Shown in pieces: positions 12,489 to 64,000 of a stretch of 64,000 nucleotides of DNA. The translations under genes were made by a program, and so were the position numbers. The stretch is taken from the NCBI RefSeq assembly GCF_006345805.1, contig NC_042999.1, positions 134,850,001-134,914,000 of the forward strand, in the 5' to 3' direction. The stretch is from Octopus sinensis. Taxonomy: Eukaryota. Numbering within the stretch: position 1 is the stretch's first letter; every line of letters starts with the position of its first letter. Under the pieces are notes generated by a model that saw nothing but the letters and a program-made list of their open reading frames with translations, did no database searches and was not told where the DNA came from.

Positions 12489-13029
12489 TTCAACCACGCT
12501 GGTGGTTCAATATATTCTTAAGTCCACCATTTCGTTAATCGCAGTAGCTTCCAAGCTTCCCACTAATTCAATTCTCAACAAAATTGCAAACTGTTAATAG
12601 TTTTAGAGAGGACATCTCTTCAGCTACATTTGGCATAAATAATTTGAAATTTGGTTCAGTAGAAAAAAGTCACATCAAAATATGTCAGACCTCAAGGTGG
12701 GCAGTAAGGCAGATATTCTTCTTCAATTAACATAACTTTTTTTTTAATTTTCAAATAAAAGTATACTTTTATTAAGCTTAAATGAAAGAAAAATGCATGA
12801 GGACTTCAGAATCGTTAGTCGCATTGAACAAAAATTAGTAGAAAAAGAGTTATGAGGTAAAACGTCACAAAATGTAATGTCAGTAAGTGAGGAAGTAAGA
12901 AGTAACGCCCCCAGTAATAAGAATATATTTCTAAAATGAATGCTTTCTTCCTAAGGCGGCGAGCTGGCGGAAACGTTATCCCTCCGAGCAGAATGCGTAA
13001 CAGAATTTCGTCTGTCTTTACATAATTTA

Positions 13030-14902: not shown

Positions 14903-15658
14903 ATGTCTTCCTCCCCTATTGCTCTTGGACAACAAAAATTAATCATTCCAGCTGAAGTACATCAACAGGTACAAAAACCAACCATGCCCTCCTCTCCTGA
15001 TGCTTCCCAACTAAAACAGAGATCGACCATCAGCACAGAAGTTGCAGAAATTAGACGAATGATTTCCGCTTTGAGTCGTGAAGTAGCAGGACTCAGAACC
15101 AGTGTCTGTCCAAAAACTCGCAGCGAAGGGTCATATAGGAGTGCCCTGCTCAGCAACTTACCTGTAGCTCGTACAGAACCTCAACGCATCGAGGGAGTTG
15201 CTGCGCCGGCCACTCATGAATTAATAGCCATCGGAGTGCCGGAAGATGTGGCAGATCTGCAGGCATTCATTGGAAACACAGCTAGGGATCTCAGCTGTGT
15301 CCCTCCAAAAAGTGCTTCCCGCCTTGGCCGACCGGGATCCAAACCCAGGCTGATCAGACTGTTGTTTACGGGCTCTACTGAGGCGCGGACATTCCATCTG
15401 GCTGCTGACAGAGCTCGGCGTGACAACATTATCAACTTTAGAACGCGTCCTGGCCTACCACCCGATGTACGCCCAAAGATAAGATCCGTGGCTTCCCTAA
15501 ATCGCAACTCTGTGCCACGGGAGAGTTTTAGCCTCCGCGATGATGGGCAGATCTGGAAATTCGTCAAGTCTGGTGAGTCGTGGATAAGGGATGCCAGTTG
15601 GACTGAACAGACTACACCCACAACAACAACTGGCAATGCAAAAATCTTGGGAAACTAA
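14903..15658 (+). CDS. CR1 LINE ORF1 (251 aa)
   Basis: Open frame directly upstream of ORF2. Contains a coiled-coil-like segment and an RLG..KPRLIRLLF motif typical of LINE ORF1. Confidence 0.75.
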   Translation: MSSSPIALGQQKLIIPAEVHQQVQKPTMPSSPDASQLKQRSTISTEVAEIRRMISALSREVAGLRTSVCPKTRSEGSYRSALLSNLPVARTEPQRIEGVAAPATHELIAIGVPEDVADLQAFIGNTARDLSCVPPKSASRLGRPGSKPRLIRLLFTGSTEARTFHLAADRARRDNIINFRTRPGLPPDVRPKIRSVASLNRNSVPRESFSLRDDGQIWKFVKSGESWIRDASWTEQTTPTTTTGNAKILGN

Positions 15659-18469
15659 CCAAGAACAATCAGCCATCCCCTGTATATCATCATCTGAAAT
15701 CCAGATATAAACTGCTGTCCTTGAATGCCCGTAGTTTATGCAACAAGGTGCATCTTTTTGTCTCCTACGTCAAAAGTATCAACCCAGATTTCATCACAGT
15801 CACGGAAACGTGGGCACACTCTGCACTCTGTGATGGAGTTTTCAGCATAGCCGGCTACAACCTGTTCCGCAAAGACCGCATTAATCGCCGTGGAGGGGGT
15901 GTGATGATTTATGTTCGATCAAGTCTATCGGCAATCCCCTGTGATGATTTGAACCAATCTCAGCAGGAGGTATTTTTCTGCAATGTACACATGACCATGT
16001 CAACACTTCTGCTCGGAGTCGTTTACCGTCCTCCAAATTATCGCCAAGATGCACAGCTTTTTGATATCCTCAGGGCGGCTGCCATGAAAACATCCACATA
16101 TGTTGCGGGGGACTTCAATTTCCCTGAGATTGACTGGGAGGCCTTCCGTTGGCCGCAAAGTGCAGACGATTTCCTTGAACTGGTGCTGAATTCGAATTGG
16201 TCCCAAGTTGTTACCTCCCCCACAAGGGGTAACAACACTTTGGATCTGCTACTTACCGCTTCTCCTGAAACAATCATTAGTGTCGCTACCGAAGAACCTT
16301 TGGGTGACTCTGATCATTCCATGATCATGGCCGACTTGTCTCTGATTGGTTGTAACAAAAAACACAACCATCTTCAGACTGCCCGCTTTGACTGGAATAA
16401 AGCAAACTGGAGCTCTTATTGTACTGAGCTGCAACGCCCAAACTGGCGCGAATTTTATGCCTCTGGAGATGTGGACACTATACTCCAGAACATTCTGAAT
16501 TCAATATGGGCAGCATGTGCAGCATCAGTACTACGCAAGCACAAAAAACCACCCAATAGTGCAATTTGGGAGACTGCAGCAGTCCGACTTGCCAGGAAAG
16601 AACGCCGTAATGCTGAACGGGAATACAAGTTGCACAAATCAGAGAGCAACAGGAAAAAGCGCAATAGGTCAGCCAACCACCTCAAGCAGGTGACAAAAAA
16701 GGCAGTGCTTGAATTTGAACAACGCATTGCAGCTAACCCTGACAGCAAAGGGTTCTGGAAGTATGTGCACTCAAAGCAGAGACCCCCACTCTCCTGTTGG
16801 TCCCCTTCGCAATCCCCACACAGGACAGATTACTGGCAATCCCGAAGAATGTGCAGAAATCATTGCTGGATGCTATGCCGGCATCTTTACTGTCGAAGAC
16901 CAAAATGTTCCATCATCATCACCACTGACATCGGACTCTATATCTTCTATGCAATTTACACCAACAATGCTGCAACGCCACCTAAAGAATAAACGCAATT
17001 ATGCCTCTCCTGGTCTCGATGGTGTTACAGACCTACTTCTCAAACGCGGTGGGTACTTTCTTCTAGGCCAACTTTCTCTATTCTTCCAATTCTGTCTTGA
17101 CAGTGGTGTTACTCCAGAACAGTGGAAAACTGCCAGTGTCATCCCTCTGTTCAAAAAAGGCGACCGCACATCGCCAGTCAACTATCGCCCCGTCAGTCTT
17201 ACTAGCTGCATCGCCAAACTGATGGAATCCTGTATCAGAGAAACCCTCTGGAACTTCTGGAAGTCTCACAGCCTCATCCAGCCGTCACAATTCGGATTTA
17301 TTCCTAACTCCAGCTGCTGTAATCAACTCATCGAGTTTCTTGAGGACGTTACCCAAATCACTGATCGCGGATCCTGGGTGGATGTTGTTTACCTGGACTT
17401 TGCTAAGGCTTTTAACTCTGTGCCACACAAAAGACTTATGGTGAAGCTTTCTGCGATGGGTGTAAGAGACGAAGTCTATAACTGGTTAAAGTCCTTTATT
17501 TTCGGCCGAAAAGAGGTTGTCACAGTTCTAGGACAGCACTCTTCGCCCTATGAGATGACATCTGGTGTGCCGCAGGGATCTGTTCTTGGCCCCCTTTTAT
17601 TTGTTGCATATGTTAATGACATAGATGCCAACTTAAAGAATTCCACAGTGCTGAAATATGCAGATGACATCAAGCTGTACCTCGAAATAAAGAGGTCAAA
17701 TCCTGTACACTATGGATCTCTATTGCAAGCAGACATGGACACAATGCAGCAGTGGATCATGGACTGGCAACTCAAGATGGCTGTGGACAAATGTACCACC
17801 ATGCATTTTGGGAGGAGAAACCCAGCGTCCACCTACTCCCTCCACAACACTAGTCTCAAAAAGTCTTCAAGTGAACGTGACCTGGGTGTTATTGTCGACA
17901 GTGATTTGCGTTGGACAAAACACATCGCTAAAATTGTCAAGAAGGCTGAGGGTGTCTTGGCATCACTCATCAAATCCTTTATGAGCCGCTCTCCGGCTAT
18001 CTATCTGCGGCTTTATATAGCTATGGTAAGACCTCACCTGGAATTTGCGTCACCGGTCTGGAACCCCTATCTTGTCCAGGACATCAATCGTCTGGAAGCT
18101 GTTCAGCGACGTACAACCAAAAGAATACCCTCCATCAGGCATTTGCCATATCCTGAACGCCTTACTTCCCTGAGCATGGACACATTGAAACTCCGACGTC
18201 TGGCAGCTGACTTGGCAGACACCCATAAAATTATCAACCATCGCACAAACAATAACTCTGAGCACCTCTTCAAACTCCACCCATCTAACACCCGTGGACA
18301 TATTTACAAAGTAAGAAAACAGCACAGCTCCCATGACTTCAGGAAACATTTTTTCACGCTGAGAGTTGCTGAAGCGTGGAACAAACTGCCGGCATCGGTT
18401 GTTAGTTGTCGGAGCACTGCATCCTTCAAAACTTCCATGCTTCCTGAGATTCGCCAACACTACACTTGA
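15649..18469 (+). CDS. CR1 LINE ORF2 (APE endonuclease + reverse transcriptase), no upstream ATG, one +1 frameshift at the C5 run 16783-16787
   Basis: Frame open from 15607 and first ATG only at 15904, inside the APE domain. Removing one C from 16783-16787 joins the 423-aa and 586-aa ORFs (KQRP-HSPVGPL). Confidence 0.9.
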
Positions 18470-21356: not shown

Positions 21357-21550
21357 AATGCTACATCAACCAAAATTGTGCCATTGCCAAAGGATGTGAC
21401 TGTATATCGATGGACAAACAGCCTTGCTTACAAAAGTGTTCCCATTACGCTTTGTGTATATATGGCACTTATACAGTGACTTCTTGTGGCTACGGTAGAA
21501 GGTTTGAGCCGAGTTTAAGAAGATGCATCCCTGGACGTTGTCAATATTAA
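21357..21550 (+). CDS. Isolated terminal exon encoding a 10-Cys peritrophin-A/ChtBD2-like module, paralog of gene A exon 5
   Basis: Pyrimidine tract + TTGCAG acceptor, phase 1. Reads CYINQNCAIAKGCDCISMDKQPCLQKCSHYALCIYGTYTVTSCGYGRRFEPSLRRCIPGRCQY*. Cys spacing is identical to 46432-46631. AATAAA at 21855. Confidence 0.85.
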
Positions 21551-24264: not shown

Positions 24265-25440
24265 TACGAGGGGCGTTCAATAAGTAATGCCCCTGACCCA
24301 CTTCCCATATCAGTAGAGCAACGAAACTTGGCACAGTTATTAGTCTTTTTCTACATAGAAACCACCCAGAGTTACGCATTTCTCCCATCGTTTGATGCAG
24401 CTCTGGAAACCGTTTTTGTAGAAGACCCCAGCTTGGTCCTCCAACCACGACGTGACTTCAGAAATCAAGGCTGCATCATCTGGGAAACGCTTTCCTTTCA
24501 AAAACAACTTCATGGCTGGGAAGAGGTGAAAATCAGTGGCTGCAAAGGTTGGGAGAGTAGGGGGGTGGGGGAGGAGGTCATAGCCGCACGCCTGTGCTTC
24601 TGATCTGGCAACACGCGAGTTGTGGACCGGAGCGTTGTCCTGCAGGAGGAGGATGCCTTTGCTGATCTTGCCCCGCCTCTTGATTTTGATAGCTTCTCTT
24701 AATTTCCCCAAAAGTGAAGCATAATAGGCTCCTGTAATTGTGGTACCCTTTGCCAGGAAATCTGTCATCACTACTCCGTCCTGGTCCCTGAAGACTGTGA
24801 GCATGACCTTGCCCGGAGGGCTGCACCCTTGCCTTCGTTGGAGGAGGTGAGTCACGGTGCTTCCAATGCATTGACTGGGCTTTGGTCTCTGGATTATAGT
24901 GATGGACCCAGGTTTCATCCTGTGTAATCAGTCTTTTGAAAAATTTTGACACATCTTCTTGGCACATCTCCAAATTCATCCTCGAGCACTCGACGCGTTC
25001 TTGCTTCTGGAAAGGTGTGAGCAACCTGGGAATCCATCTGGCAAACACCTTTTGCATATGCAAATGGTCATGAATGATAGTTTCCACAGACCCGGTACTA
25101 ATCTTGACCTCATGGGCTATTTGGCGAATAATTATGCGTCGATCTTCCAAAACGGCAGCCTCCACTTGACGGACAGATGCCTCATCAATGGCAGAAGGGG
25201 GGCGACCAGATCTGGGAGCTGTTTCCACAGAGTTCCGACCATGTTTGAATTCACGATGCCAACGTTTTACAAGGTCATATGATGGGGCATCATCACCATA
25301 AGTTACTTTCATTTCATCAAAAGTCTCCCGTGCTGTGCGTCCTTTCAAATACAAAAACTGGATCACTGCTCGACACTCAACAGGCTCCGTTTCACACTTG
25401 ACTCATTCACCATGATAGATCGCTAGCTACTACACATTCT
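24265..25440 (-). mobile_element. Mariner transposon (D,D34D), frameshifted, one TIR retained
   Basis: TA-CGAGGGGCGTTCAATAAG TIR. Motifs WIPRLLT, ITQDETW, LQDNAPVH and HPP..TDFHLF. Frameshift near 24815. Confidence 0.92.
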
Positions 25441-27354: not shown

Positions 27355-28472
27355 TAGTTAGGCCATTTTTTCCGGAACGTTGAACACAACATGGACAAAA
27401 AGCAAATTCGCACAATTTTCTTATTCCAGTTCAAGCTAGGCCGAAAAGCTGCTGAAACAGCTCGCGATATCAACGATGCATTTGGCCCATGAACTACTAA
27501 TGAACATACAGCACAATGGTGGTTCAAGAAATTTCGTAGCGGTGACGAGAGTCTTGAAGATGATAAGTGTAGTGGTCGGCCATCGGATGTTGACAACGAT
27601 CAACTAAGAGCCTTAGTGGAAGTCAATCCACGCACAACTGTTCGAGAGCTTGCTTCTGAATTAGACGTAACGTTTACGACAATTCCCAACCACTTGAAAG
27701 AGATTGGGAAAACAAAAATACTTGAGAAATAGGTGCTGCATGAATTGAATGACAACCCCCCCCGCCAAAAAAACCCGCCGTTTTGAAGTGTCGTCTTCCC
27801 TTTTACGCAACAAGAACGACCGGATTGTGACTTGTGATGAAAAGTGGATTCTTTACGACAACCGGTGACGTTCAGCTCAGTGGCTGGACGCCGACGAGGC
27901 TCCTTGGCACTTCCCAAAGCCAAAGTTACACCAAAAGAAGGTCATGTTAACTGTTTGGTGGACTGCGGCCGGTCTCATCCATCACAGCTTTTTGAATCCA
28001 GGCGAAACCATTACGGCGGAGAAGTACTGTCAGCAAATGGATGAAATGCATAAGAAACAACAGCCAGCTCTGGTCAATAGAAAAGGACCAATTCTTCTCC
28101 ACGACAATGCTCGGCCGCACGTCGCACAACTCACCCTGCAGAAGTTGAACGAATTGGGATACGAAACTCTGCCTCATCTGCTATACTCACCAAACTTCTC
28201 ACCTACCGACTATCACTTTTTCAAGCATCTCGGCAACTTCCTGCGTGAGAAATGCTTCAAAAACCAAAACGATGCCAAGCACGCCTTCAACGACTTCATC
28301 GCCACCAGAACGCAGGATTTTTACGCTACTGGCAAAAATGAAGTTGTTTCGCGTTGGCAGTGTGTTGATTCTGATGGTGTTTATTTCAATTAATAAAGTT
28401 TTGTTTGAGTCGAGATATGTGCATCTGAATTTAAAGGTTAAAAACTGCAAGAACTTTCTTGACAACCTAATA
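27355..28472 (+). mobile_element. Hsmar1-like (cecropia-type) mariner, decayed; ATG 27391, stop 28393, right TIR 28443-28470 + TA
   Basis: MDKKQIRTIFLFQFKLGRKAAETARDINDAFG, SGRPSDVDNDQLRA, LLHDNARPH and YSPNFSPTDYHFFKHL. Right end ACAACCTAATA. Confidence 0.92.
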
Positions 28473-33372: not shown

Positions 33373-34572
33373 CTACTTCAGAAGAAAGGAAAACTAATAC
33401 AAATAGCGGCAAAACACGAGCAAAACAAAAAACTGTTCTCAGTATTTAAGGAAGCTGACAAATACTAACAAGAAATCAGACCACCTAATAAATATGAAGA
33501 AGAAGAAGAAGAAGAAGAAGAAGAAGAAGAAGAAGAAGAAGAAGAAGAAGAAGAAGAAGAAGAAGAAGAAGAAGAAGAAGAAGAAGAAGAAGAAGAAGAA
33601 GAAGAAGAAGAAGAAGAAGAAGAAGAAGAAGAAGAAGAAGAAACAACAAAAGCTATAAAACAAATGAAATCCAAACTAAAAATAGAACAGCAACGAACCA
33701 TGATAAAACGATGGCAAGAAAAGCCCCTTCATGGTAAATACTGGACTAAACTAAACGCAAAAGAAATAGACAAAGAAAAATCCCAGCAATGGTTGAGAAG
33801 CTCAGGACTCAAAGCAGAGACAGAGGGATTTTTAATTGCAGCACAAGACCAAAGCCTCCCCACCAGAAATTACCAAAAACATGTAATGAAAAGAAATATA
33901 ACAAGTAACTGCAGAATATGTGGAGATGGACAAGAAACAATAAATCGTATTATCTCTGGCTGCCCAGTCCTGGCTAAGAAGGAATATATTCACAGACATG
34001 ACAGAGTTGGAACCTACATACACTGGAAGCTATGCCAACATTATGAAATAACAACAGAAAAAAGATGGTATAGGCACACACCAGAAAAGGTCACAGAAAA
34101 CGAGAAAGCAACCATACTCTGGGATATGCCGATACACACAGATAGAGAAATTAAGGCCAACAGACCAGATATAGTTGTCAGAGATCATGAAGAAAAAAAA
34201 TGCTTTCTAATTGATGTATCAATACCGGCAGATGACAACGTGTCTCTAAAAGAAATGGAGAAACTTTCAAAATACAAGGACCTGGAAATAGAGGTAACCA
34301 GAATGTGGAATCTAAAAACAGAAACAATTCCTATCATAGTAGGTGCATTAGGCATGATAAAAAATATTCAGACAAATACATAACGAAAACACCAGGACTT
34401 ACAAACACATATAACATACAGAAAATTGCACTACTAGGCACTGCACACATCCTACGCAGAACACTTTCCATACAATAACCATCAGAGCATCACAACAAAT
34501 CACAGCACATACCTAAGGCACACAGAGCTGTGCTCGGTAGTGAAGTGAAAGCTCGCTATAAAAATAAAACTA

Positions 34573-34870: not shown

Positions 34871-35532
34871 TTCTTAAATATAGAACTATATTATTCTAAG
34901 TTTTCTGTTTTCTAAGCCTTCATTTGAAATTCATATATTTTGCAGCTGTTTTTATGATCGTCCCCACCCCCCTGTGTATATTGGGTCTCGGTCCCACTGC
35001 ACAGTACCATGGACAGCCCCGAACCAAAGACATTTGAGTGTATTTGGTTGACAGAAACTGAAAGAAGTTTGGGATCTTTTCCTTTTGATGGACGGATTTC
35101 AACACAATTTCTAGTTAACTAAACAATTTGAAACTTCGTATACTGGTAGAATGTGTCAAAAGAAAACATTATTTTCACTTGGCTTTTTTGAGAAAATTGT
35201 AATTTGTAAGTTTAACGTAGTTTAATTTTTCGAATTTTAACCAATGAACTGCCAGTATTTGAGCTCAAATCATTTGCTGCGTCTAAAAACTCAGACAACA
35301 TCCTGTTACAACGTAATATTTTTTCATAAAAGGATGCCCCAGCTTGTCGGAGGCTGTGATATAAATTGGGAAAAAATCCTCGACACCAGTGCGTAATTGG
35401 TACTTAATTTATCGACCCCGAAACGATGAAACATTGACCCCCCCACCATCTTTTTTCTGTTGTTATTTCAAAAAGATCTGAAGTTTGTCATATACATGCA
35501 TACATACATACATACATACATACATACATACA

Positions 35533-36903: not shown

Positions 36904-39086
36904 CAAAATGGGACAAGAACGCAAAACATCCGGACAACTGGTGATACAAAAAGGGACAACAAAACATCCAGATAGACAATACAAAAAACAAGGACGGGTC
37001 ATTCGAAGCTTTCTATCCTCAATCAAGAACCGGATCATCCTCGCAATTTCGGCTGATTAAACCTTGAGATTGCTCCAATCTGGTCAACCCCAAGGAAAAA
37101 CTAAGCTAAGAGCATTAGGTTCCTTGGAAGCATCGAATGTATACGAAAACAAGGACGGCAAAACAGACGATGTTATACAAATATAAATACAAATACAATA
37201 AAAATAATAATAACAGGACATAACAACAGGTGTCTTTCGACTTTTTCCATTTGGTGCACATATGTTACGATTTTTTTCCTTTCTGCTCTTGAACACCCAA
37301 ACTAAAGCTGACCATGGGTGAAGCAGAGTTCTTCAAGGTGTAAACAGGCAACTGAAAATATTTGCTCCTGTGATTTGTTGATGGTCATGGCAAAACCAAG
37401 ATTCACTGGAAACTGAAATCATTTGAATTGAAATGAGACATTGTCTCCTGAGTCCATACGACGGGGCTTTTATGCACTTATCCACTAATCGATGCATCCT
37501 ATGCTCGGGTGTCTCCTGAGACGGTGCGACAGAGACGTGTGTTCGCATATCTTCAAGTCTATTCCTTCCATATTTGGTGTCTCCTGACACTGTCACACTA
37601 ATGAAGTTGCTTACACACACTTACTGACACTCCCACATGCACACACACACACAAGCATATACACACTCGGCATGTACATAGAAAGAGTGAAGAGAACGTG
37701 ATAGAGAGGAAACACGTCAAAAAAGATAGAGACAGATAGAAAGAGGTAAATAGAGAAACAGTTATAAGACGTCACACACAAATAGACGTACACATACATG
37801 CACACACACACACACATATGCACACACACTCACACACATATGCACACACACTCACCTCACACGCATACAAATGTACACGTGAGTTTAGGATGGTGGTTTC
37901 TAAAGACATTCAATGTTGGCAATTTAGAAGTTGAATTATTTCTCACCACAAATTATATTTTTTGATTACTAATAACCAACGACCTTCTTGGGACGCACAT
38001 TTTGAAAATCAAACCTGTTTCTCTCTAGGATGCACCGTTTCTGAGCCTTTCAGGGACATACATACATACATACATACATGCATACATACATACATACATA
38101 CATACATACATACATACATACATACATACATACATACATACATACATACATACATACATACATGGTGGCTGCCCCCTCGTTATCGAGTATGGCCATTGCA
38201 CGAAGCTTAATCAATGTTGTTATCGTGCAATGCCTGTGCAAGAATATTTTTTTAAGTGAGGAAAGGCTGTGCACTGAGTCAATCCTACTCACTAAGCAAC
38301 TGCAGCCATAATCCGAAAAGAAGAACAAGTCAACATCATCGGTAACCACTGAGCCGCAGGTTTTATGTCGGAGTTATCCCAGTTACCTGAGTTACCTTCT
38401 CCTAGAAGGATGCCCTAACAAAGGCTAGGAGTCCTTCACTCCCAATGGTTTAACCGTGCGATCGGGTGTTCAGTCCGATTATTTCTATGTCCCCGTGCAC
38501 GATACATCCTTAAGACATTTATTGGATGGCCGTTGACTCTCGAGAGTTCCTCCGCCCTTTGACGGGTTTTGTTTTTCATCCCGCAGGGTGTCCAATAAAC
38601 ACCCTCCTCACCAAGCAAGCTTGGTGGGGTTGCTGGTTTACCATGGACGACCCGACCATGCAACAGGTTGTACTGGGTTACATGTAACCAGTAACACTCG
38701 AAAGTGACCTGACACATACATACATACATACATACATCCATCCATCCATCCATCCATCCATACATACATACATACATACATACATACATACATACATACA
38801 TACACTCACATTTATATATTAGAAGGTGTGTGTGTGTGTGTGGTGTGTGTGTGTGTGTATCAGCCGGGCTTTAACACAGTTTTCGTCTGTCAAATTCAGT
38901 CTGCTAAAGTAAAAGACATTTGCTCAAATGCTTAACGGCATTTCGTCCGTCTTTACGTGTTCTGAGTTCAAATTGCCTTTCATCCTTTCAGGTTCGATAA
39001 AATAAGTACCAATTGAACACTGAAGTCAGTGTAATCGACTCATCTCCTCCCCCAAAAATTTCAGGCATTGTGCTTATAGTAGAAAC

Positions 39087-39560: not shown

Positions 39561-39575
39561 ATCGTCATTAAGGTG

Positions 39576-39700
39576 GCGAGCTGGCAGACAGACTCCTTAG
39601 CATGCCCGGCAAAATGCTTAGCGGCACTTTGTCCGTCTTTACAATCTGAATTCAAACTCCGCCGAGGTCGACTTTATCTTTTATCCTTTTGGTGGCGATG
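39576..39700 (+). mobile_element. Deu/Nin-type SINE 5' fragment
   Basis: AAGGTGGCGAGCTGGCAG head and GCCGAGGTCGACTTT. Confidence 0.7.
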
Positions 39701-39909
39701 AATTAGTATGTTGGGCTGTGGAAGAGCAGAAACTGTAGAACGCTGAATTTATAGTATTTAATCTTGTCTCTCTATATCTTAAGCTCAATTCCTTGACCAA
39801 GTTGAAACCAAGAATTTTATGTCAAATTCTTAAGGAATGTCATTTTTGTCTACTTCTGCAATGTAAAAGTAAGAAATAGCCCCAGATTATCAATTCTCCC
39901 AACAGCATA

Positions 39910-40364: not shown

Positions 40365-41029
40365 GTGAGTGAAGAAAAGTTCCGTTTAACTTACATTTTC
40401 TTTTTTGTCTGAAAGTTGATCACATGTCCTTCTATGATTGACTTATCCTCAGTGCAGCAGTGCAGTATGTCACACTCTGTACAGAAACACTGTGTCACAC
40501 TCTCTTTAGCAATACAGTGTCATTTTCGGTAGCACAATACAGTGGTCATTGTCTGTGCGGCAACTCTATTGGCTTCCTATACAGCTACAATATGTGTCAT
40601 TCTAAATACACCAACAGATAGTGGTTTATTCTCTATACACAGAGTATGCCATTCTCTCTACAACAATACATACCGTGAAAAAGAAAGAGACAGAGAAATA
40701 AGGATTTCACTCTAGTATTGACTCCGAATGGAAGAAAGGCTAATTTGACCTCAGAGCGTAGACATCCGAAACTAATACTACAAGACAGTCAAACCGAAGC
40801 TCAAACCACTTGCCTTATACTTACATACATACATACTTTTCGCAGCGAGGCTTAAAGTTCAAAACTTGTAGTTATACCTACATTAAATCATAGTTTATCC
40901 GGTATCACTACCTTGTGCATAATTGTTACATAAATACCGTACATGTTGTAATGATTGTCAATAAATGTATTTATATTAGTTTACAATATTCATTTATTCA
41001 TACTTTAATTTTATTTACAGAGAAACAAA

Positions 41030-41362
41030 ATGAAGTACTTGGTGTTTATTCTAATGTCGCTAGTTGTTTGTGTGGAATGCTACAAATTTTCAGCTGAAAT
41101 TGCAAAATGCTTTGGCGATTATTCAAAGAATATGTTTGATCCGGACAAAAAGATATCTTCATATAAATATTGTATGGATAAAATTTTATTTAATAACCCC
41201 CGTTTAGATACATGGAGTGACTATTTTCCAGACATAAATAATTTTAAAAGAGGAAGTAACAATTCTATGATGGTCAGGGGAATTAGAAAAGAATATAGAA
41301 TGCTCACTCTCGTAGAAAGAGACAATTTTCATCGCGCCATTAATATGTTGAAACAAGATACG
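41030..41362 (+). CDS. Gene A coding exon (exon 2): signal peptide, N-terminal region and RKEYRMLT motif
   Basis: TTTACAG acceptor at 41020 and ACG|GTAAGT donor. Homologous to 63241-63585. Confidence 0.9.
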
Positions 41363-42612
41363 GTAAGTTTTCATATAGAAAATTTGTTCATATCATTTAA
41401 TTCTTTTTCTTCTTTTAACAGGTCATTAACAGATACGTCTTTATTCGATATCAGTTAATTACTAAATTTAATGAACAACTTTTACTGTACTTTGTTACAA
41501 AACGTCAGCAAATTAGTTAATTCTTACACATATACACGTAAAATTCGAGGGTGTATGATGTTCATGGTTTGTCCCAGTGGTGTTGTAAACCAAAGTAAAG
41601 TGAAACATTTATAATAAGTAGCAATTAATTATAAAGTTTAAACCTTAAACGGTAAATATCATCAATTGATGTTTCATTAGAGAACATCAGACATTAACTG
41701 ATGTTTCAAAAATTTTACATAGATACGGCCGCTACCAAATGAAAGTGAACATTTTACGGAACTTTTCAATAATGAAATTGTAAATTTTATTGTGTGCGAG
41801 TCTAACAATTGTTATAATTGTTGTATTTGTTTAAGTGAAAATAAGCCTAAAAATTGCCCTCAAGAAAATTAGCTATTTTTGTCTTTTTTCTCCTCATTTG
41901 GCACACATATTCATGCAAGTTTTTCCACTGTTTAAGAGTTAATTACATTATCGTTGTTACAATAGACGATCTTATAGATTATTAAGCATGTACGTATATA
42001 TGTATGCATGTATGTATGTATGTATGTATGTATGTATGTATGTATGTATGTATGTATGTATGTATGTATGTATGTATGTATGTATGTATGTATGTATGTA
42101 TGTATGCATGCATGCATGCATGTATGTATGTATGTATGTATGTATGTATGTATGTATGTATGCAACGTTATGCTAACTAATGATGTCCACTGTTCTTTTT
42201 ATTTAGAGTATGACTCCAAATAAATACGATGCGATCGCCTTCCTCCATACTGGTCACACGGTTAGAAACGCTCACTCTGGCCCTTCTTTTCTAGTTTGGC
42301 ACAGAATGTACCTTAACATGTAAGTATTTTCTCTTAGATATGAGATTTATTATTTTCGACATTTTTCTACTTTTCTTTCTACTCTAATTTCCTAACAGTA
42401 TTTAATGCGATACTTTACTAATAAATCTTTCATAATTCCTGCAAGACAAGTATAAGTAATACACATGTAATATTAATAGATCTGACTGAATTGAACTGCA
42501 TTTGGAGGCAAGTTACATGAGTTTATTAGTCAGATTTGTACTTAATTGAATATACATGTATCCACAGGTGTGTGCGTGAGCGAGAGAGAGAGAGAGTGTG
42601 TGTGTGTGTGTG

Positions 42613-42644
<32 letters not shown>

Positions 42645-45600
42645 AGCTTTGTTAACATATGCTCGTATATAGGTACATAAGAGCATTTGTATGTGAGTAC
42701 TGCATCTTTGATATTCCGGTTACTCATCAATGACTGTTCGCTATTATTTCAACAAGTGGTTTGAATGTTATTGTTCCCTACATTCTAATTTATCTTCTGC
42801 TGAATAAGCCATTCTAATTTGAATACCGACAATGTTACTCATATATGTAGTACAAAACTCTGGTGGTCACTTACTAAATAATCATGTTCGTTATTTCTTT
42901 ATATTTGACAATTTATTTCAGTGATATCATAGAAATGTTTTACTGTTTTCCTCAATGCTATCATAAGATGTGTTTGTGAAGAAAGTTGAGCTGAAATAAG
43001 GACTTCTAATAAAGAAGATTCGGTAATTTGACACGCACAGAATATTCAGTACATATTACAAAAAAGAATAGAAATTTAATGTATTGCTGATATGATTTAA
43101 GGCATTTCATTACTGATATTAGAAACACACCGATATTCTATTCCGCAAAATACTTATCATCATCACCGTCGTCGTAGTCGTTGTCCTCGTAGTTATCAGC
43201 ATCATCATCATCATCTTCGCTTTATTTATAGCATCATTTTTCTTTTTTTTTTCATTTCCTCAGGATGGAAGACGCTCTTAATGAAAAGGTGTCAGGAGTA
43301 ACAATTCCATATTGGGATCCAACACTTGACAGCTCTCTTGATGATCCTCGAGATTCCATTATCTGGACGGATAAATTCTTGGGAAATATTAATGGAATTG
43401 TTAATTGTGGTCCGTTTGCTAACTGGAGCACACCAGCTGGGCCTCTGATAAGGAATGGTGGTTTTATTAGTAACTTACCAACTACTCGCGACATAAGAAA
43501 TATTCTGAGCCGATGGAGACTTGCAGATATCAGCGAACCAAATGCGATTGGTAAATACAACTTGGAATTTCACCACAATTCTATGCACAATTTTATTGGA
43601 GGACATTTAGGTCAACCAGAAACCTCTCCCATGGATCCAGTTTTCTGGCTAATCCACAGCTATATGGATCTTCTTATGAATCGTTTCAATGAGAACCAAA
43701 AGAAGCACAATGTCGATCCTGCAACAGATTATCCATTAAATTATGGTTTACCAGTTTATGCTCTCGATCACAGTATTGGACTGAAAAATATAACAATCAG
43801 AGAAGCATTAAAACAAACTCAATCTTACAGTTACATTTCTTCATATGACTACGCTATACTTGAGATGCCATGTAACGGAAATCCAGCGGTCCAAGTTTCT
43901 CCTTATCTAACTTGCCACAATGGAAGATATCAGACGAAAACTAGAAAATCAGCTGGTTGCAATGCTCTTATTCCCTATCAGAATATGTTTTGTATTAACC
44001 GTAATTGTGATCTAAAAGAATGGGCATTTATTCCAGTTGAAGTAATTTACGAACGACCTTTCGAAACGATGAAATTTGGAAATTTCCCGATCAGAAATGG
44101 CATACCAGATTTACTGACTGATCTATACGACAATAATGTACCCCAAAATATCTCATCTAGTAACTCTACTTGCCGAAGTAAAAAGTGTTGTGGTCCCGCG
44201 GAAAGAGTCAGTGTGCAAGCCAGTGGCATTAATTATTTTGGTAACTATGAAGAAATGGTGATAGTTGATCGTAGATTAGCTGTATCATCGGATATAGCCT
44301 ACATTGGTATCAGAAGACCTACAACAAACTTCAGTCTGGTATTTACGACAGTTTCAGAACAATGTGGAAGAATATGTCGTCCTTCCTGCTTAGTGCCGGG
44401 TTCAAATCCACCGAAGTACACAGAATGTATAGGTCTGTTGAACTTAACTCACAATGATGCTCATTTCTACGGCAATACTCTGGCAGAAGCTTACATGAAA
44501 GTGTGGGATTATAAAAACCAGATACGACCGAAAGTAAGACACGAGAATATACCAATCGTATACCATTGTGATGACAGCCTGTGGCCATTTAACAACACCG
44601 ACTATACAACAACAACACCATCATCTTCGACAACAGCGTCAACACATACACAAACCACAACTACTACCCCTACCACTACTACAACTCCAACAACTACAAC
44701 ACCAACAACTACAACACCAACAACTACAACACCAACAACAACAAGTTGGGTATGGAGAACATCTACAACACCAACAACAACTAGTGGAAACAGTAATGTC
44801 TGTAAGTATTTCATTTATCCACTCCTTTACTAAACCCATGTCTTTGTGTGGGTTATATTGTAAAAAGCAAAAGTACCTATAATTTATTACTAGATCAATA
44901 GCGTCACTTATTTTTTTACTCTCAACAAGAGATCATGTCTATTCCCATTATCCTTCCGAATATTTTGCATAAATAATTTTTATATACAAGTTGTTGAGAG
45001 ACAGAGGCGGTGGAGGGACGGGTTATCTCTACTTGTTATCTTTACTTCCTGAATGTATCTTTTTTTCTGAATTCAAATTCCATTCAGATCAATTTTGGGT
45101 TTCATCGTTCAGGTGCCGATAAAATAAGACCTGTGTCCTGTGTGTAAAGTTTAATTTATAAGTTTATGTCACTGAAAAGAAGTGTTAAGCCAAACTAAAT
45201 ACTAAATAGTGTAATTTTTTTTTTTTAATCAGAAGTCAGATAACTACGGTTCACTCCACATATACATGATATTGTACCAGTATCTGAAATTGATATGCAA
45301 CTAACATACATAATCATAACTATGATGTATCATAAAAACAAAAAGAAGCGAAAAAAAACTTTGTATTTTGTTGCATACATTTCTAATCATAGCCTTATTA
45401 AATTCTAATTTGCAACATCCCAATAGTCTTTTGTATAAAATTCTTCTAATTGGTTTCAAGCAGCTCAACCTTCTCTTTCTTGGTATGTATATTATTATTG
45501 TCCACAAGATAATTCCGCCGTGGTCGACTTTGCCTTTAATCTTTATGAAGTCGACGGAATAATTACCATTGAAGCACTGGGGTCGATGTTACCACTTACA

Positions 45601-46631
45601 CAATTTCTCCTTCTACACAATTTAAAGCCTTGTGCCTATAGTAGAAACGATCATTATTCACGAGCTACCTATAATGAATATATATATATATATATATAGT
45701 AAAAAAGAACTTCGTTGAAGCGATTATCCCCGCGTGTTAAGTTATAACGCAAAAATATATAATAAAAGAAGGAAGCTGCACACAGTTCACATATATTTTA
45801 AATAGTAGAGTATTGTGATAGTCAACCGGTTTGGTGTTTCGCTAATTATGGCATTATTAAACTATGTGCATTTTTCTTCGTTTATTATATATATTAATAC
45901 TTTATGTGACCGTTGCAATCTGGTTCATTCGAGAATCTTGCACTATGGATTATGAAACTATAATAATCCAAAGTGTGAAACGTCGTTTACTTCTTTAGGA
46001 ATTCATTTCGAAATAAAGTAATTTGAGATTTTGACACAAGGCCAGCAATTTCGGGGGAGTGGATAAGTCGATTACATCGACCCCGGTGTTCCAATGATAT
46101 TTATTTTATCGAAAAGAAATAAATATTTAAATCACCTCGAAAGGATAAAAGGCAAAGTCGACCTCGACATAATTTGAACTCTGAAAGTATAGACGGACGA
46201 AATGCTGCTAAGCAGTTCATCCGTCTTTCTAACTGTTCTATCATAAACCTTTTCATTTGTATTAAGAACAACCAAATGTACTACCCAACTCTAACTTTTT
46301 TTGTTTGTGCCTTGCGTTGACTTCATGATATTTCTTTACAATATACGTAATAAATTCCTGAAAAAATACCATACTAGATATAACGTGACTAATTTTACTC
46401 TCTCTTTCTCTCTTTTTTTCTCTCTTTCTAGTCTGCAAAGTTGATGATTCCTGTATAGTCCCATCGGGATGTAGTTGTAAATTCTTCGAAAAACAACCTT
46501 GTCTGCAAATGTGCTCCAAATATGCTGTATGTTTCAGAGGTTATTATCATGTTTTGCCATGTGGTTATGGTTTTAAATACGACCAACGTCAGCAAAGATG
46601 CGTCCGTGGATACTGCGTACACAGAGGGTAA
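41030..46631 (+). CDS. Gene A: secreted tyrosinase-like protein with Cys-rich CTD, Thr-rich linker and C-terminal ChtBD2-like module; join(41030..41362,42207..42319,43264..44801,46432..46631), 727 aa
   Basis: All introns are GT-AG with compatible phases (0, 2, 1) and the 2184-nt frame is uninterrupted. Signal peptide present. CuA His in FLH, AHSG, WHR. CuB His in HNSMH and WLIH. PYWD motif present. Confidence 0.92.
42207..42319 (+). CDS. Gene A exon 3: CuA site
   Basis: TTTAG|AGT and AT|GTAAGT junctions. Reads SMTPNKYDAIAFLHTGHTVRNAHSGPSFLVWHRMYLN. Too short for the ORF track. Confidence 0.92.
43264..44801 (+). CDS. Gene A exon 4: CuB site, Cys-rich C-terminal domain, Thr/Pro linker
   Basis: CTCAG|G acceptor. 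Contains MEDAL..IPYWD and LEFHHNSMHNFIGG..DPVFWLIH. T|GTAAGT donor. Confidence 0.93.
44604..44786 (+). repeat. Coding Thr/Pro mucin-like repeat (15-nt CCAACAACTACAACA units, PTTTT)
   Basis: In frame within exon 4 of gene A. Confidence 0.85.
46030..46235 (-). mobile_element. Deu/Nin-type SINE in gene A intron 4, with an oppositely oriented fragment at ~45510-45635
   Basis: AAGGCAAAGTCGACCTCG and GATTACATCGACCCC family motifs. Confidence 0.7.
46432..46631 (+). CDS. Gene A terminal exon: 10-Cys peritrophin-A/ChtBD2-like module
   Basis: Long pyrimidine tract + CTAG acceptor, phase 1. Reads FCKVDDSCIVPSGCSCKFFEKQPCLQMCSKYAVCFRGYYHVLPCGYGFKYDQRQQRCVRGYCVHRG*. Confidence 0.88.
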
Positions 46632-47235
46632 CCAAACGCCATAACATCACACTTAATAACCACTTCAACATTCAACATTTGCTGTTAAAATCAACGGTTT
46701 CTGGCGTACTTTTATACTGAACACCTCTGCAATCCATCGATTCGGTTCAGTGCGATTTATAAACAATACATTAATCATAAGCAATACATAAAAAATTATC
46801 AAGATGGACCTTGATTCTGTTGGGTGGCTAAACGCTCTCATAATCACTTACTCACACGATACTAAATTATTTAATATTTACGGTCAGTTAAACATTGAAT
46901 CAACGTTTGTGTCTATACATGTATGCATACATATGTATATATCTATAAAGTATGTGTACACATGTACGTGTATGTATGTATGTATGATGTATGTATGTAT
47001 GTATGTATGTATGTATGTATGTATGTATGAATGCATGTATGTATGTATGTATATTATGTATATATATATGTATGTATGCATATATATATTTATATGTATA
47101 TATATTATATATGTATATTATATATACTTATATGTGTATGTACATATAATGAATATATACGAATATGCATGAGTAAATGAACATGTATATGTGTGTACAT
47201 ATGCGTATGTATATGTGTATATGTCTATCTATCTA

Positions 47236-47279
<44 letters not shown>

Positions 47280-50049
47280 TTATATATATATACATAGATG
47301 TATATACAATTTATATATATACATAGATGTATATATGTATGTATAATCGATTAATATATATATTCACACATATATATACATATATATACACATGTATGTA
47401 TGTATGTATGTATGTATGTATGTATGTATGTATGTATGTATGTATGTATGTGTGTATGTATGCATGCATGCATGCATGAATGTATGTATACATATGTTGG
47501 TATGTATATGTATATATATGCGTGAGTATCTATGTATGTGCGTTCGATTCCCACAGCCGATGTTATTTACACCTTCTCCTCTTTTACAGAGTGTATGTAT
47601 ATGAATGTGTGCATGTGTGAGTGTGTGCGTGCACGTAATATAAATGTTAATGCTGTAGCATTGCCTGTGGGATTCAAGTACCACGTTTATATCCATATTA
47701 ATTATTATTCTGAAAAATCAACGAAATTAATTATCTATTAATCAACTGAACTTTCAAGTAAATGTATACAACACACACACACATGCTAACACACAAACAT
47801 AACTATATTTATACTAATACATACGTATTTATGCAAAAATATTTTAAAATGTATGTGCATATTCACTTTTGTTATAAAAAATATACCTCTATATTATAAG
47901 CGATATAACCTTCATATAAACGATGTGCCTACACGTTATAAAAATTATATCCCATGATATTGAATAATAAAATTATTTATTAAACAAAATATTTGTGTTA
48001 TTGTTTATATCTACTTCTTCGAAGAAGTATCAGTTATGTACTGGAGTCAATTTCATTCAATGAGCTTTTCTCCAGTATATTTAGGGAAGGAGGGTTATGC
48101 TGCATAACAAAATTGTTATTCGTATGCGAAAAGGGCAGAAGAAAATATACATTGAATTCTCAATGTTGGAACCCCCTTGGAAGTAATAGAAGTTTCAGTC
48201 TAAATACAAATTCCGATTAAATATTTATATTTAGGAGTTTGAAAACCAGTGTACCAATGTGTTTTAGTAGATTGACGGTAGAAAGGAGATGTGAAATCAA
48301 TCTTACTTTAGATAGAATGCCAGTTTTTTTTACAACTTACATTTTCATATTACACTGTGCAACATCATTTTTGTCCTTGAGTAGCAACTGTTATTTCATC
48401 TTTGCTTACCCATAGAAAATATGAAAAATGGCTATTTCCTTCAAACATTGCTTTTGTTAGATTTATTCAAACCCTAAACAATTCCTCGCAACACATGGCT
48501 ATGATGCTCTCCCACAACTCCTGCTCATGATCAGAGATGCATATATTGTCAGCCACCAAGGGACAAGCTCAAGTGATTAAAGTCAAGCAACTGGCAAGCA
48601 AATTTGTGGTATTGAGTAGAATATTTGCTATAACGATATTTCTGCTTCAGCAACTCAGCACCGAATCTATCAGGTCAATTTCAAAACATCGATGTCCAAG
48701 TCACAAAAGCAAAGTTTGAAGAGAATAGTAGTCATTTCCTTCGGTTTCTAGATAGAAGTTAATAAGAAACAACACTTAGTGGCCAAAGACAAAAGAAAAT
48801 AATAAAAAGTTTGTTTCACTGTTGTTTGTTGCTTTTTCCTCCTGATAGTTATGAGAAGGATATTTTTGTTAGCTGCTCAGATGAAAAGATGATGTGCCCA
48901 AAGCGTTTTTGCAGATGCTCCCAAATTGGTGAGATCGATATCCTGAAATTATCTACACTGGAGAGAGAATTCAATTCCGTTGGACTGTTGTTTAGCCCCG
49001 TCTAATTCTCAACCCCGTCTAATTCCCAACCCCGTCTAATTTTCAACTCCATCTTTTCTTCAGAATGAGGTCCACCTTTATGAGACAGTGGATTGCTGTG
49101 CGAGAGAGATATCTAATTGTTACTTTTAGCAAGTAAAGAGATTATGTATACGTTCTTTTGTTGGCACAAATTCCATAAAGTTGCAGTTCTAATAAGAAGG
49201 ACTGATTAAAGTGTTTGGCGTGAGATTCGGGAGGTAAAATGTAGCAAGGATAACGAGAAAAAGACAGGTTGAACGTGAACAGAGGAGATACACAGCTGGT
49301 TAATTCAAAGCAGCAGATGTTGGAGTAGATGAAGAAGAGGTAATGAGAAGAAACAGTGTGTCTGTGATCTGGTGATATTGGAATTTTGGTCGTGAATTTT
49401 TCCAATTAGCTAAACAGCCATCTTATGAATTTGATCTACGAAATTAGCGAACATAGCAGTGTATGCAGTTTAGTATGATAGAAAAGGCTTGACCCATAAC
49501 ATTCATTGGCTCACCGAAATTGGTGAGATCGACACGGTTGATGTTCTTCATAAACAGCTACAAGTTAACGGTTACAGAGAAAACATTAGCAGAGAAGGAA
49601 TTCCAGACGGAAAACATTCTGGGGATGAAGGACTGGAAGATCACTCAGTATTGGTCATGAAAGGAGAGACGAGTAGGTTCGGTACGCTCAAATGGAGGTG
49701 TCACGAGACCAACCAGCTCAGACTAGCAGAAGTCACCTTAGTATTAGTAAAAAAAAATGCTGAGAGAGACGACAGCAAGGTTGTGAGCCATTTGAGGTGT
49801 ATCGGTAAATGACACCATGTCACTCAGTTAAATGACTTTTTAAGAGATGCGATCTACAATATTTGAATGTGTAGTAACATGCCATCCCAATGGAATGGAG
49901 CTGCTTCCAAATGAATTTCCCGTGAGTTTTGTATACAGCTGATATATTTTCTGACTCCAAAAGAGAATAAGAGTATTTAGCATGCAGCTTTTTCTATGTT
50001 GAGAATATGAGATCACCAGAAGAGATCTTCAGTGATAGTAGTGCTAAAT

Positions 50050-56550: not shown

Positions 56551-56958
56551 ATGAGACTTCTATCCTCAAGTTATTCTACTTCAAATTATAATCCCCCTAG
56601 ATGTAACTGCAGAATTAAATCAAAATGCCCGGCACCTGGTTTATGCGGGTTAAATAACATAATCTACAAATGCTCCATAACCACAGATAATAATAAATTC
56701 ACTTATGTTGGATGTACTGTAAATTTTAAGAAAAGATTGAACAATCATCTATCCTCCTTCAGATTACGTCATAAAGCTGATAGCACCACTCTTTCTAGTA
56801 AAATTTGGGAACTAAAAAACAATAATATCAAATATAACCTTAATTGGGAATTAGTCAGAAGAGCAATACCCTATAAAAATAGCAGAGTAGGTTGTCAACT
56901 TTGCTCCATGGAAACATTTGAAATACTAATGAATAGAAAAATAGGGAAATTTCAATGA
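56551..56958 (+). CDS. Penelope GIY-YIG endonuclease fragment
   Basis: CNC..KCP..GLC..NIIY..YVGCT..FKKRLNNHLSSF..ST.LS..IWELK..C.LCSME. Confidence 0.85.
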   Translation: MRLLSSSYSTSNYNPPRCNCRIKSKCPAPGLCGLNNIIYKCSITTDNNKFTYVGCTVNFKKRLNNHLSSFRLRHKADSTTLSSKIWELKNNNIKYNLNWELVRRAIPYKNSRVGCQLCSMETFEILMNRKIGKFQ

Positions 56959-63189: not shown

Positions 63190-63240
63190 ACATATGTGTG
63201 TATCTATTATACTTCTAATCTTTATTTGCAGAGAACCATA

Positions 63241-63585
63241 ATGAGGTATTTAATCTTGATTCTAACGCTGACCGTGACCGTTGTTTGTGCAGATGATTTT
63301 AACATAATAAAATCATTCACAAAATGTTACAAGAATTTCCAAAACAATGCTTTTGAATCGAACAAGAGGCAGGAGTGGCAGAAATACTGTTTGGATAACA
63401 ACCCTTATGTTCGGAAACGTTTTGGAGGTTGGGTTAACCAAATTCCAAACATTCATGACTATAATAATATGGGAGATGGTCCAAAGCCTATTAGGTCAAA
63501 GCAGGTCAGAAAGGAATATAGAATGCTCACTACAAAAGAGAGAAACGATTTCCATCACGCCATTAATCTATTAAAACAAGATACG
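63241..63585 (+). CDS. Gene B first coding exon (exon 2), secreted tyrosinase-like paralog; gene continues beyond the window
   Basis: TTTGCAG acceptor at 63231, signal peptide MRYLILILTLTVTVVCA, VRKEYRMLTTKERNDFHHAINLLKQDT, and an ACG|GTAAGT donor at the same position as gene A. Confidence 0.9.
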
Positions 63586-63821
63586 GTAAGTTCTTTAGTT
63601 GATATCAGTTAATTAGCAAATTTAATCAACAATTTTTACTGTACTTTATTACAAATTCAGCAAATTTATTAATTTTCTTACACATGAAATTCGACAGTAT
63701 GTGACCTCATGCAATGTCCCAATGGTGTTGGTAACCTAAGTAAGGCGCAACATTTGTAATAAAATAGTAATCAATTATAGAGTTTAATTGTTGCTACAGC
63801 CGACGATATTGGAGCTAAAGT

Positions 63822-64000
63822 AAGGCGGCGAGCTGGAAGAAACGTTAGCACGCCGGGCGAAATGCGTAGCCGTATTTCGTCTGTTCTGAGTTCAAATTCC
63901 TCCGAGGTCGACTTTGCCTTTCATCCTTTCGGGGTCGATAAATTAAGTACCAGTTAAGCACTGGGGTCGATGTAATCGACTTAATCCGTTTGTCTGTCCT
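63822..64000 (+). mobile_element. Deu/Nin-type SINE, young-looking copy, runs off the window
   Basis: AAGGCGGCGAGCTGG..GAGTTCAAATTCC.CCGAGGTCGACTTTGCCTTTCATCCTTTCGGGGTCGATAAATTAAGTACCAGTT. Confidence 0.88.

Follow-up and report, generated by a model that had tools for sequence, protein, structure and literature searches.

A predicted secreted tyrosinase of octopods with a threonine-rich stalk and a divergent CBM14-like tail: a candidate matrix-held phenoloxidase

How could an enzyme that tans or melanises an extracellular matrix be kept at its place of work? The question is raised by a gene at positions 41030-46631 of a 64,000-nucleotide stretch of Octopus sinensis DNA (contig NC_042999.1, positions 134,850,001 to 134,914,000; this whole stretch is called the window below). 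An earlier sequence-only reading had described this gene as a secreted tyrosinase that is joined through a mucin-like stalk to a chitin-binding-like module. The interpretation that we favour, with a probability of roughly 60%, is that the gene is one member of a tandem array, that it encodes a secreted tyrosinase with a stalk and a divergent CBM14 domain, that this tail holds the enzyme on a matrix which it tans or melanises locally, and that the architecture is an ancient one in molluscs. The gene itself, the enzyme, the terminal module and the relatives are taken up in turn, and the competing explanations are weighed where the evidence bears on them.

A gene model re-derived from the sequence joins four exons of the forward strand, 2184 nt in total, into an open frame for a 727-residue protein followed by a TAA stop codon. 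The coding segments are listed here, with identities given relative to the Argonauta hians protein GAB1611244.1 (P0001), the closest relative found.

41030-41362, forward strand: coding exon 1, 333 nt, residues 1-111; placed by its GTAAGT donor, by tblastn matches to homologue N-termini and by hydropathy.
42207-42319, forward strand: coding exon 2, 113 nt, residues 112-149, ending in phase 2; 79% identical to residues 114-151 of P0001.
43264-44801, forward strand: coding exon 3, 1538 nt; remainder of the tyrosinase domain, C-terminal domain and linker.
43264-44590, forward strand: first part of exon 3, residues 149-591, with the second copper site and the Cys-rich C-terminal domain; matched by PF00264 and 75% identical to P0001.
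44591-44801, forward strand: end of exon 3, residues 592-662, the Thr/Ser/Pro-rich linker; donor T/GTAAGT, phase 1.
46432-46631, forward strand: coding exon 4, 200 nt including the TAA, residues 662-727; a divergent CBM14/peritrophin-A-like module with 10 Cys.

Introns 1 to 3 begin with GTAAGT donors, end with a polypyrimidine tract and an AG acceptor, and have phases 0, 2 and 1. The predicted junctions rest on these canonical GT..AG sites and on the conserved exon structure, and the open frame across them bears out the four-exon, 727-residue product that had been proposed. Exon 2 is missing from the list of open reading frames (ORFs) of at least 40 residues, and exon 4 appears there only as a 40-residue fragment, so the sequence-only reading was right that two exons had been overlooked. 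Exon 4 matches the C-terminus of P0001 by tblastn (E=2e-13). Exon 1 encodes a hydrophobic, signal-like N-terminus with a 9-residue Kyte-Doolittle mean of up to 3.2, and the N-termini of homologues are similar; it also carries the conserved residues C27 and C48 and a terminal RKEYRMLT...LKQDT motif. An AG acceptor with a polypyrimidine tract is found 9-13 nt upstream of the ATG in this gene (41010-41029), in a second gene of the window (63221-63240) and in the Argonauta locus (L001, 9980-10000), and the acceptor AG of the gene under study sits 9 nt upstream of its ATG. This conservation suggests a further, untranslated 5' exon. The locus is best explained as an octopod gene, intact, that codes for a secreted phenoloxidase of the type-3 copper class (tyrosinase/catechol oxidase).

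The catalytic domain is the most readily recognised part of the protein. The Pfam Tyrosinase profile (PF00264) covers residues 115-291 and scores 103.9 bits, far above its cut-off of 22.6 (E=2e-29). The three ligands of the first copper site (CuA), H125 (42246-42248), H134 (42273-42275) and H143 (42300-42302), are all encoded by exon 2, and those of the second (CuB), H253 (43574-43576), H257 (43586-43588) and H280 (43655-43657), by exon 3. They follow the expected pattern of H-x8-H-x8-H for CuA and H-x3-H...H for CuB, and all six, as first read, are present; when 29 mollusc tyrosinases are aligned, each of these His is either invariant or conserved to at least 90%. Among proteins of known structure in the PDB, the catalytic part matches functional units of mollusc hemocyanins with E-values as low as 4e-46, and bacterial tyrosinases at about 1e-21. 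The full-length structure was modelled on the Argonauta orthologue, which is 62-65% identical and stands in for the window protein. The model has a confident helical core at about residues 90-340 and a beta-rich domain at about 360-590, followed by a disordered segment at 591-646 and a small, confident beta module at 649-706, with predicted local distance difference test (pLDDT) scores of about 30 and 83-89, respectively. The core superposes on the tyrosinase of Priestia megaterium (Foldseek E=2e-15, target template-modelling (TM) score 0.76), which, judged on the orthologue, points to the four-helix-bundle di-copper fold.

Between the catalytic core and the tail lie two further parts, both of which had been noticed in the sequence-only reading and both of which are present in the spliced protein. 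The C-terminal domain (about residues 340-590) has 13 Cys between residues 352 and 584, is predicted to be beta-rich in the orthologue model, and has no match in Pfam even at E<=10. Functional units of hemocyanin can be aligned to the model by Foldseek across some 530 columns, but the root-mean-square deviation is then 16-17 Å. Of the 71 residues of the linker (592-662), 40 are Thr, 8 are Ser and 7 are Pro (77% T/S/P). Part of it is encoded by a 15-bp tandem repeat of 4.5 copies (44678-44744) that specifies PTTTT. Its equivalent is the disordered segment of the orthologue model, and the linker is presumably mucin-like, O-glycosylated and extended. The order of a signal-like N-terminus, tyrosinase, Cys-rich C-terminal domain, Thr-rich stalk and CBM14-like module is thus supported.

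Exon 4 supplies 66 residues with 10 Cys. Six of these form the core C675-x13-C689-x5-C695-x9-C705-x12-C718-x4-C723, which fits the six-Cys consensus of peritrophin-A domains, C-x13-20-C-x5-6-C-x9-19-C-x10-14-C-x4-14-C, and contains the C-x5-C-x9-C-x12-C spacing (C689, C695, C705 and C718) on which the original assignment to the peritrophin-A/ChtBD2 family was based. The additional Cys (663, 669, 677 and 685) lie N-terminal to the core or in its first interval. For comparison, the spacing in the Aplysia protein EHEP is CX15CX5CX9CX12CX5-9C (PMC10619976). An alignment of 17 modules was prepared from 15 sequences of the first-search proteins and the two copies in the window. All 10 Cys, a Gly and aromatic positions are conserved across the octopod and gastropod modules, and 16 of the 17 match CBM_14 (PF01607) at E<=1, the best of them at 3e-8. 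A profile of the 17 modules finds Aplysia EHEP (E=1.8e-6), the CBM14 domain of human chitotriosidase and Blo t 12 in the PDB. In a collection of 1.84 billion proteins the same profile retrieves 1202 cluster representatives at E<=1e-3, and every one of ten sampled representatives is a strong CBM_14 protein (E from 7e-6 to 5e-271), mostly of the multi-repeat peritrophin-like kind.

Predicted structure agrees with the profiles. An AlphaFold2 model of the window module, built from the contiguous DNA 46434-46628, is all-beta with a pLDDT of 91.1 and a predicted TM score of 0.75. The best 12 Foldseek matches in the PDB are exclusively CBM14 proteins (probability 0.57-1.0, with the top six at 0.87 or more; query TM 0.45-0.61), at modest E-values of 0.017-0.7. 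They comprise EHEP, Blo t 12, CHIT1, Avr4 and Der p 23, and tachycitin ranks slightly lower. Family profile, reciprocal search and predicted fold therefore agree on the homology to CBM14/ChtBD2 that had been suspected, and the structural likeness that was expected of the last exon is found. Other identities were also considered. A chance Cys-rich ORF is ruled out by the conservation and the profile matches. A module of ShK, EGF or tumour necrosis factor receptor (TNFR) type was rejected, as just two of the 17 modules have weak TNFR_c6 matches (E>=0.21) and no ShK or EGF domain family is matched; a few EGF-containing protease chains occur low in the fold list (probability <0.1). We conclude from sequence and model that the module is a divergent CBM14 domain with an N-terminal extension bearing two extra predicted disulfides. 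By the same sequence evidence, many mollusc tyrosinases, those of octopods included, carry a divergent CBM14 domain that standard Pfam thresholds miss.

The relatives of the gene indicate how old this combination may be. The best matches come from Argonauta hians (62% identity), Octopus sinensis (58%) and Octopus vulgaris (57%), and all three alignments span 99-100% of the length. In a neighbour-joining tree of 529 well-aligned columns with 100 bootstraps, the window gene is paired with Argonauta P0001 in 98 of 100 replicates, and these two are therefore taken as orthologues. The Octopus proteins annotated as tyr-1 and tyr-3 are paralogues. As tyr-1 and tyr-3 pair with another Argonauta protein, P0004, the duplication is older than the split between Argonauta and Octopus. 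The octopod clade that bears the module (100/100) is sister to the ink tyrosinase of Illex argentinus (92/100). Homologous modules are present in 17 of the 53 proteins from the first search. Linker and module occur together in the gastropods Biomphalaria (P0014 and P0021), Bulinus, Physella, Nucella, Elysia, Plakobranchus and Candidula, in the bivalves Solemya (two copies) and Saccostrea, and in the chiton Leptochiton, and they are absent from the retrieved proteins of Mytilus, Mercenaria, Dreissena, Mizuhopecten and Sinanodonta. When the search was repeated with a full-length profile, Illex was still the only cephalopod besides the octopods.

Gene structure points in the same direction. The Argonauta gene has an identical set of four coding exons, and in the window gene, in Argonauta and in Physella, whose gene has 12 exons, a phase-1 intron precedes the first module Cys by exactly one codon. 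Because this intron is conserved, the sequences suggest that the fusion arose once, long ago and plausibly through exon shuffling, and was later lost repeatedly. On the proteins compared, the architecture is ancestral and mollusc-wide and no novelty of cephalopods. The combination of PF00264 and PF01607 is already listed in precomputed Pfam annotation for Bulinus truncatus P0016 and for the Joint Genome Institute (JGI) protein P0028. Full-text searches turned up no paper that describes a tyrosinase-CBM14 fusion, and likewise none on LOC115209318, the locus name carried by P0001. In the papers on shell matrices, tyrosinase and ChtBD2/CBM_14 are distinct entries, as domains or as proteins, and a classification paper on type-3 copper proteins mentions neither chitin nor ShK.

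The annotation of the Argonauta protein itself deserves a remark. It uses a weak donor, TATG/GTGGCG (L001, 17990-18015), and a GTGAGT donor, also in phase 1, lies 24 nt downstream. The latter is the homologue of the donor in the window, and the deposited Argonauta model may lack 8 residues (GGDSIV…).

With these parts in hand, a mode of action can be proposed. The enzyme would be exported into the extracellular matrix, where the terminal module would hold it; the likeliest support is chitin or a scaffold of chitin and protein. The flexible stalk would allow the catalytic head to reach nearby substrates, and the head would oxidise tyrosyl residues, 3,4-dihydroxyphenylalanine (DOPA) or small catechols to quinones, which would in turn cross-link (tan) or melanise the matrix locally. 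Chitin or a chitin-protein matrix ranks as the likeliest target because an enzyme followed by a Thr-rich stalk and a terminal CBM14 domain has the layout of chitinases and deacetylases. Animal chitinases and chitin deacetylases are as a rule built in this way, with a Ser/Thr-rich linker between the catalytic domain and CBM14. Both an attachment to chitin and a part in sclerotisation are plausible for this protein. The hardening of squid beak by catechol cross-linking on a chitin scaffold had also been brought forward in support; the animal is an octopod and not a squid, its best matches being Argonauta and Octopus, so that argument is only an analogy.

Several results weigh against this interpretation. 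The PF01607 match holds for the family, while the window copy of the module scores 15.9-16 bits (E=0.013-0.014), under the gathering cut-off of 22.1. Searched alone against the PDB, the window module has a best E-value of 0.06, and its Foldseek E-values are weak (0.017-1.7), as is usual for a domain of just 65 residues. A transcript of this gene from the source species was looked for, and none was found. The Cys-rich C-terminal domain may be a hemocyanin-type beta-sandwich or a cap with a role at the active site or in latency. CHIT1, Avr4 and tachycitin are chitin binders, though via non-conserved residues, and EHEP and Der p 23 are CBM14 members without chitin binding (PMC10619976). Membership in CBM14 is no guarantee of chitin binding.

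The last point opens the best surviving alternative, that the module has the CBM14 fold but, like EHEP, binds phenolics or another matrix or protein partner instead of chitin. Its task would then be to trap a substrate or a product, or to fix the enzyme to a matrix of protein. EHEP is the nearest solved relative of the module both by sequence profile and by fold, with 42% identity across 38 aligned columns in the latter case, and it binds tannic acid and phlorotannin with no chitin-binding activity (PMC10619976). The four extra Cys and the N-terminal extension are both foreign to canonical CBM14, and for an enzyme that oxidises phenols, a tail able to bind them would be functionally sensible. 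The phlorotannin or tannic acid ligand of EHEP, however, is held at the centre of a triangle of three domains (PMC10619976), a pocket that a single domain is unable to reproduce, and EHEP may rank nearest merely as the sole molluscan CBM14 protein with a solved structure. A Thr-rich stalk that ends in a CBM14 domain is, moreover, typical of chitin-tethered enzymes. We regard this alternative as unlikely and retain chitin or a chitin-protein matrix as the most probable target.

A second alternative concerns the purpose of the enzyme rather than its anchor. It may be a melanising or defence phenoloxidase, of ink gland, skin, egg protection or immunity, and not a tanning enzyme of hard chitinous parts; any chitin binding would then be directed at the chitin of fungi or parasites or would retain the enzyme in mucus or a secretion. 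The sister position of the Illex ink tyrosinase favours this alternative, and the claim of the sequence-only reading that the gene is "not an ink-melanin enzyme" is not supported by it. The Illex enzyme itself, on the other hand, is without linker and module. Egg masses of Biomphalaria yielded a tyrosinase presumed to be immunoprotective (PMC5685644), and module-bearing homologues exist in that genus. In Argonauta, tyrosinase contigs peak in arm and epithelial tissue, and tyrosinase is not in the eggcase proteome (10.1101/2021.07.10.451900). According to the same preprint, which labels tyrosinase a single-domain enzyme, these contigs exceed 1000 transcripts per million (TPM) in arms, are very high in arms, first-arm membrane and mantle, and are zero in eyes and hearts (10.1101/2021.07.10.451900), but the expressed contigs are not matched to this gene. 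The full-text searches yielded no paper with tissue data for the gene. A melanising or defensive role of this kind seems rather improbable to us, and local tanning or melanisation of a matrix by a tethered enzyme remains the preferred reading.

The weakest alternative, that exon 4 stays outside the mature mRNA or that the gene is an unexpressed duplicate, would give a product without the module that ends a few codons into the intron (…NVCKYFIYPLLY, then a stop codon; the 522-residue ORF 43265-44833), and the missing transcript, the lack of an identical protein in a collection of 5.8 billion proteins and the lack of AATAAA or ATTAAA within about 770 bp 3' of the stop codon speak for it, yet it is very improbable given the strong donor T/GTAAGT, an acceptor with a long polypyrimidine tract and AG, an open exon 4 with 10 of 10 Cys conserved, an intron position and phase shared with Argonauta and Physella, annotated Octopus and Argonauta proteins that contain the module, and intact catalytic His.

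A broader proposal can be attached to the preferred reading of a matrix-held enzyme, but only tentatively, and the odds are against it as a whole. The gene may descend from an ancestral molluscan "matrix-tethered tanning enzyme" that was fused once, before chitons, gastropods, bivalves and cephalopods split, and was kept where chitin-protein composites harden, such as periostracum, shell matrix, radula, beak, sucker cuticle and stylet. It would then be the long-sought oxidase behind the catechol/quinone cross-links of the cephalopod beak, and the ink tyrosinase would have arisen from it by loss of the tether. If the tail does tether the oxidase to chitin, the family becomes a candidate for the tanning enzyme of the cephalopod beak, radula, sucker lining and stylet, and also for the tyrosinases that have turned up again and again in the shell matrices of molluscs, and the confinement of oxidative cross-linking to a scaffold becomes directly testable. 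This under-annotated, putatively matrix-tethered family of tyrosinases is a testable candidate for the oxidative hardening of molluscan chitinous structures.

The gene does not stand alone. Two more pieces of tyrosinase genes share the window and the strand, so that at least three same-strand paralogues, this gene among them, are arrayed in tandem:

21357-21550, forward strand: terminal exon of an upstream paralogue, with the same phase-1 acceptor and 10-Cys module as the gene under study (…CYINQNCAIAKGCDC…GRCQY, then the stop codon).
63241-63585, forward strand: first coding exon of a downstream paralogue, with a signal-like N-terminus, the RKEYRMLT...LKQDT motif and a GTAAGT donor.

The upstream exon is 84% identical to the C-terminus of the O. 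sinensis and O. vulgaris tyr-1/tyr-3 proteins (P0002 and P0003). No other exons of this paralogue were detected in window positions 1-21356; either the last intron of the paralogue is more than 21 kb long and has a non-LTR (long terminal repeat) retrotransposon inside, or the exon is orphaned. The downstream exon shares 36.5% identity with the first exon of the studied gene, and its gene runs past the end of the window. Among the annotated Octopus proteins, P0002 and P0003 are identical from the equivalent of exon 3 onwards, bar two linker residues, and differ in their first 150 or so residues, and P0005 resembles two tandem copies merged into one model. The Octopus array may have alternative 5' exons, or the models may be mis-annotated across tandem genes.

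The window, which has a G+C content of 36%, also contains mobile elements and repeats:

14903-15658: ORF of 251 residues upstream of the non-LTR element; no Pfam match.
15721-18469, forward strand: non-LTR retrotransposon whose ORFs overlap and are read in different frames, one with an apurinic/apyrimidinic (AP) endonuclease domain (PF03372/PF14529) and the other with a reverse transcriptase (PF00078, E=6e-37).
24340-25366, reverse strand, and 27944-28393, forward strand: remnants of Mariner/Mos1-type transposases (HTH_48 and a partial DDE domain, Transposase_1), split over overlapping ORFs.
33664-34383, forward strand: ORF with a weak zf-RVT match (E=2e-4, under the cut-off).
56551-56958, forward strand: ORF with a GIY-YIG nuclease domain (E=2e-5), possibly a Penelope-like element.
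420-850, 1447-1693, 12952-13015, 35380-35431, 38973-39040, 39569-39705, 45511-45598, 46064-46239 and 63791-64000: copies of an interspersed repeat resembling a short interspersed nuclear element (SINE).
41988-42162: microsatellite (ATGT) x44, in intron 1.
42596-42640: microsatellite (GT) x23, in intron 2.
46969-47489: microsatellite (TGTA) x131, beginning about 340 bp past the stop codon.

The Mariner/Mos1 remnants are probably decayed, as they are split over overlapping ORFs. The SINE-like repeat (…GTCGACTTTGCCTTTCATCCTTTCGGGGTCGAT…) is present in at least 10 copies with 68-92% identity, and two of these lie in opposite orientation in the intron before the module exon.

Comparison with known systems places the protein among its relatives and separates it from them. 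The same five parts are found in Argonauta P0001, annotated as "uncharacterized protein LOC115209318" and encoded by four coding exons at 62% identity, as well as in Octopus proteins of a different paralogue, the O. sinensis protein XP_036357241.1 (P0002, "tyrosinase-like protein tyr-1 isoform X3") and the O. vulgaris "tyr-3" proteins (P0003; the accession CAI9720078.1 belongs to cluster member P0205). P0002 and P0003 are 57-58% identical to the window protein over 99-100% of the length. Precomputed Pfam annotation gives PF00264 only for P0001-P0003 and leaves the module unrecognised. Relatives in gastropods, in some bivalves and in a chiton (the "tyrosinase A" of Leptochiton) have the same domain order and a homologous module at 30-36% identity. 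Gastropod linkers are Pro-rich whereas that of the window protein is Thr-rich, gastropod modules have an insertion of 6-8 residues and higher PF01607 scores than the window copy, and the 12 exons of Physella contrast with the 4 of the window gene. The closest non-octopod in the tree, the ink-sac tyrosinase 2 of Illex argentinus (Q76DT9, P0009; 33-34% identity over 78% of the length), has the same core and C-terminal domain and then ends, without linker or module. Nematode relatives bear C-terminal ShK/ShKT domains instead. Brugia malayi, for example, has a secreted tyrosinase of the same subfamily (P0048; 37% identity in the core) that also carries a small disulfide-rich C-terminal addition; this addition is an ShK domain (PF01549) of unrelated fold, and it is not preceded by a Thr-rich stalk.

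Outside the tyrosinases, the module has two instructive counterparts. Aplysia kurodai EHEP (PDB 8IN3/8IN6) is molluscan and shares the C-x5-C-x9-C-x12-C core, but it is a stand-alone protein of three peritrophin-A domains with no enzyme domain, and its ligand is phlorotannin and not chitin. Human chitotriosidase CHIT1 (PDB 5HBF and 6SO0) shares the layout of a catalytic domain, a flexible Ser/Thr-rich linker and a terminal six-Cys CBM14 domain, and that domain is among the top matches to the window module by profile and by fold. Compared with animal chitinases and deacetylases, the window protein is a copper oxidase and not a glycoside hydrolase or an esterase, and its module has four extra Cys. 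Chitin binding has been demonstrated for CHIT1 and is putative for the window module.

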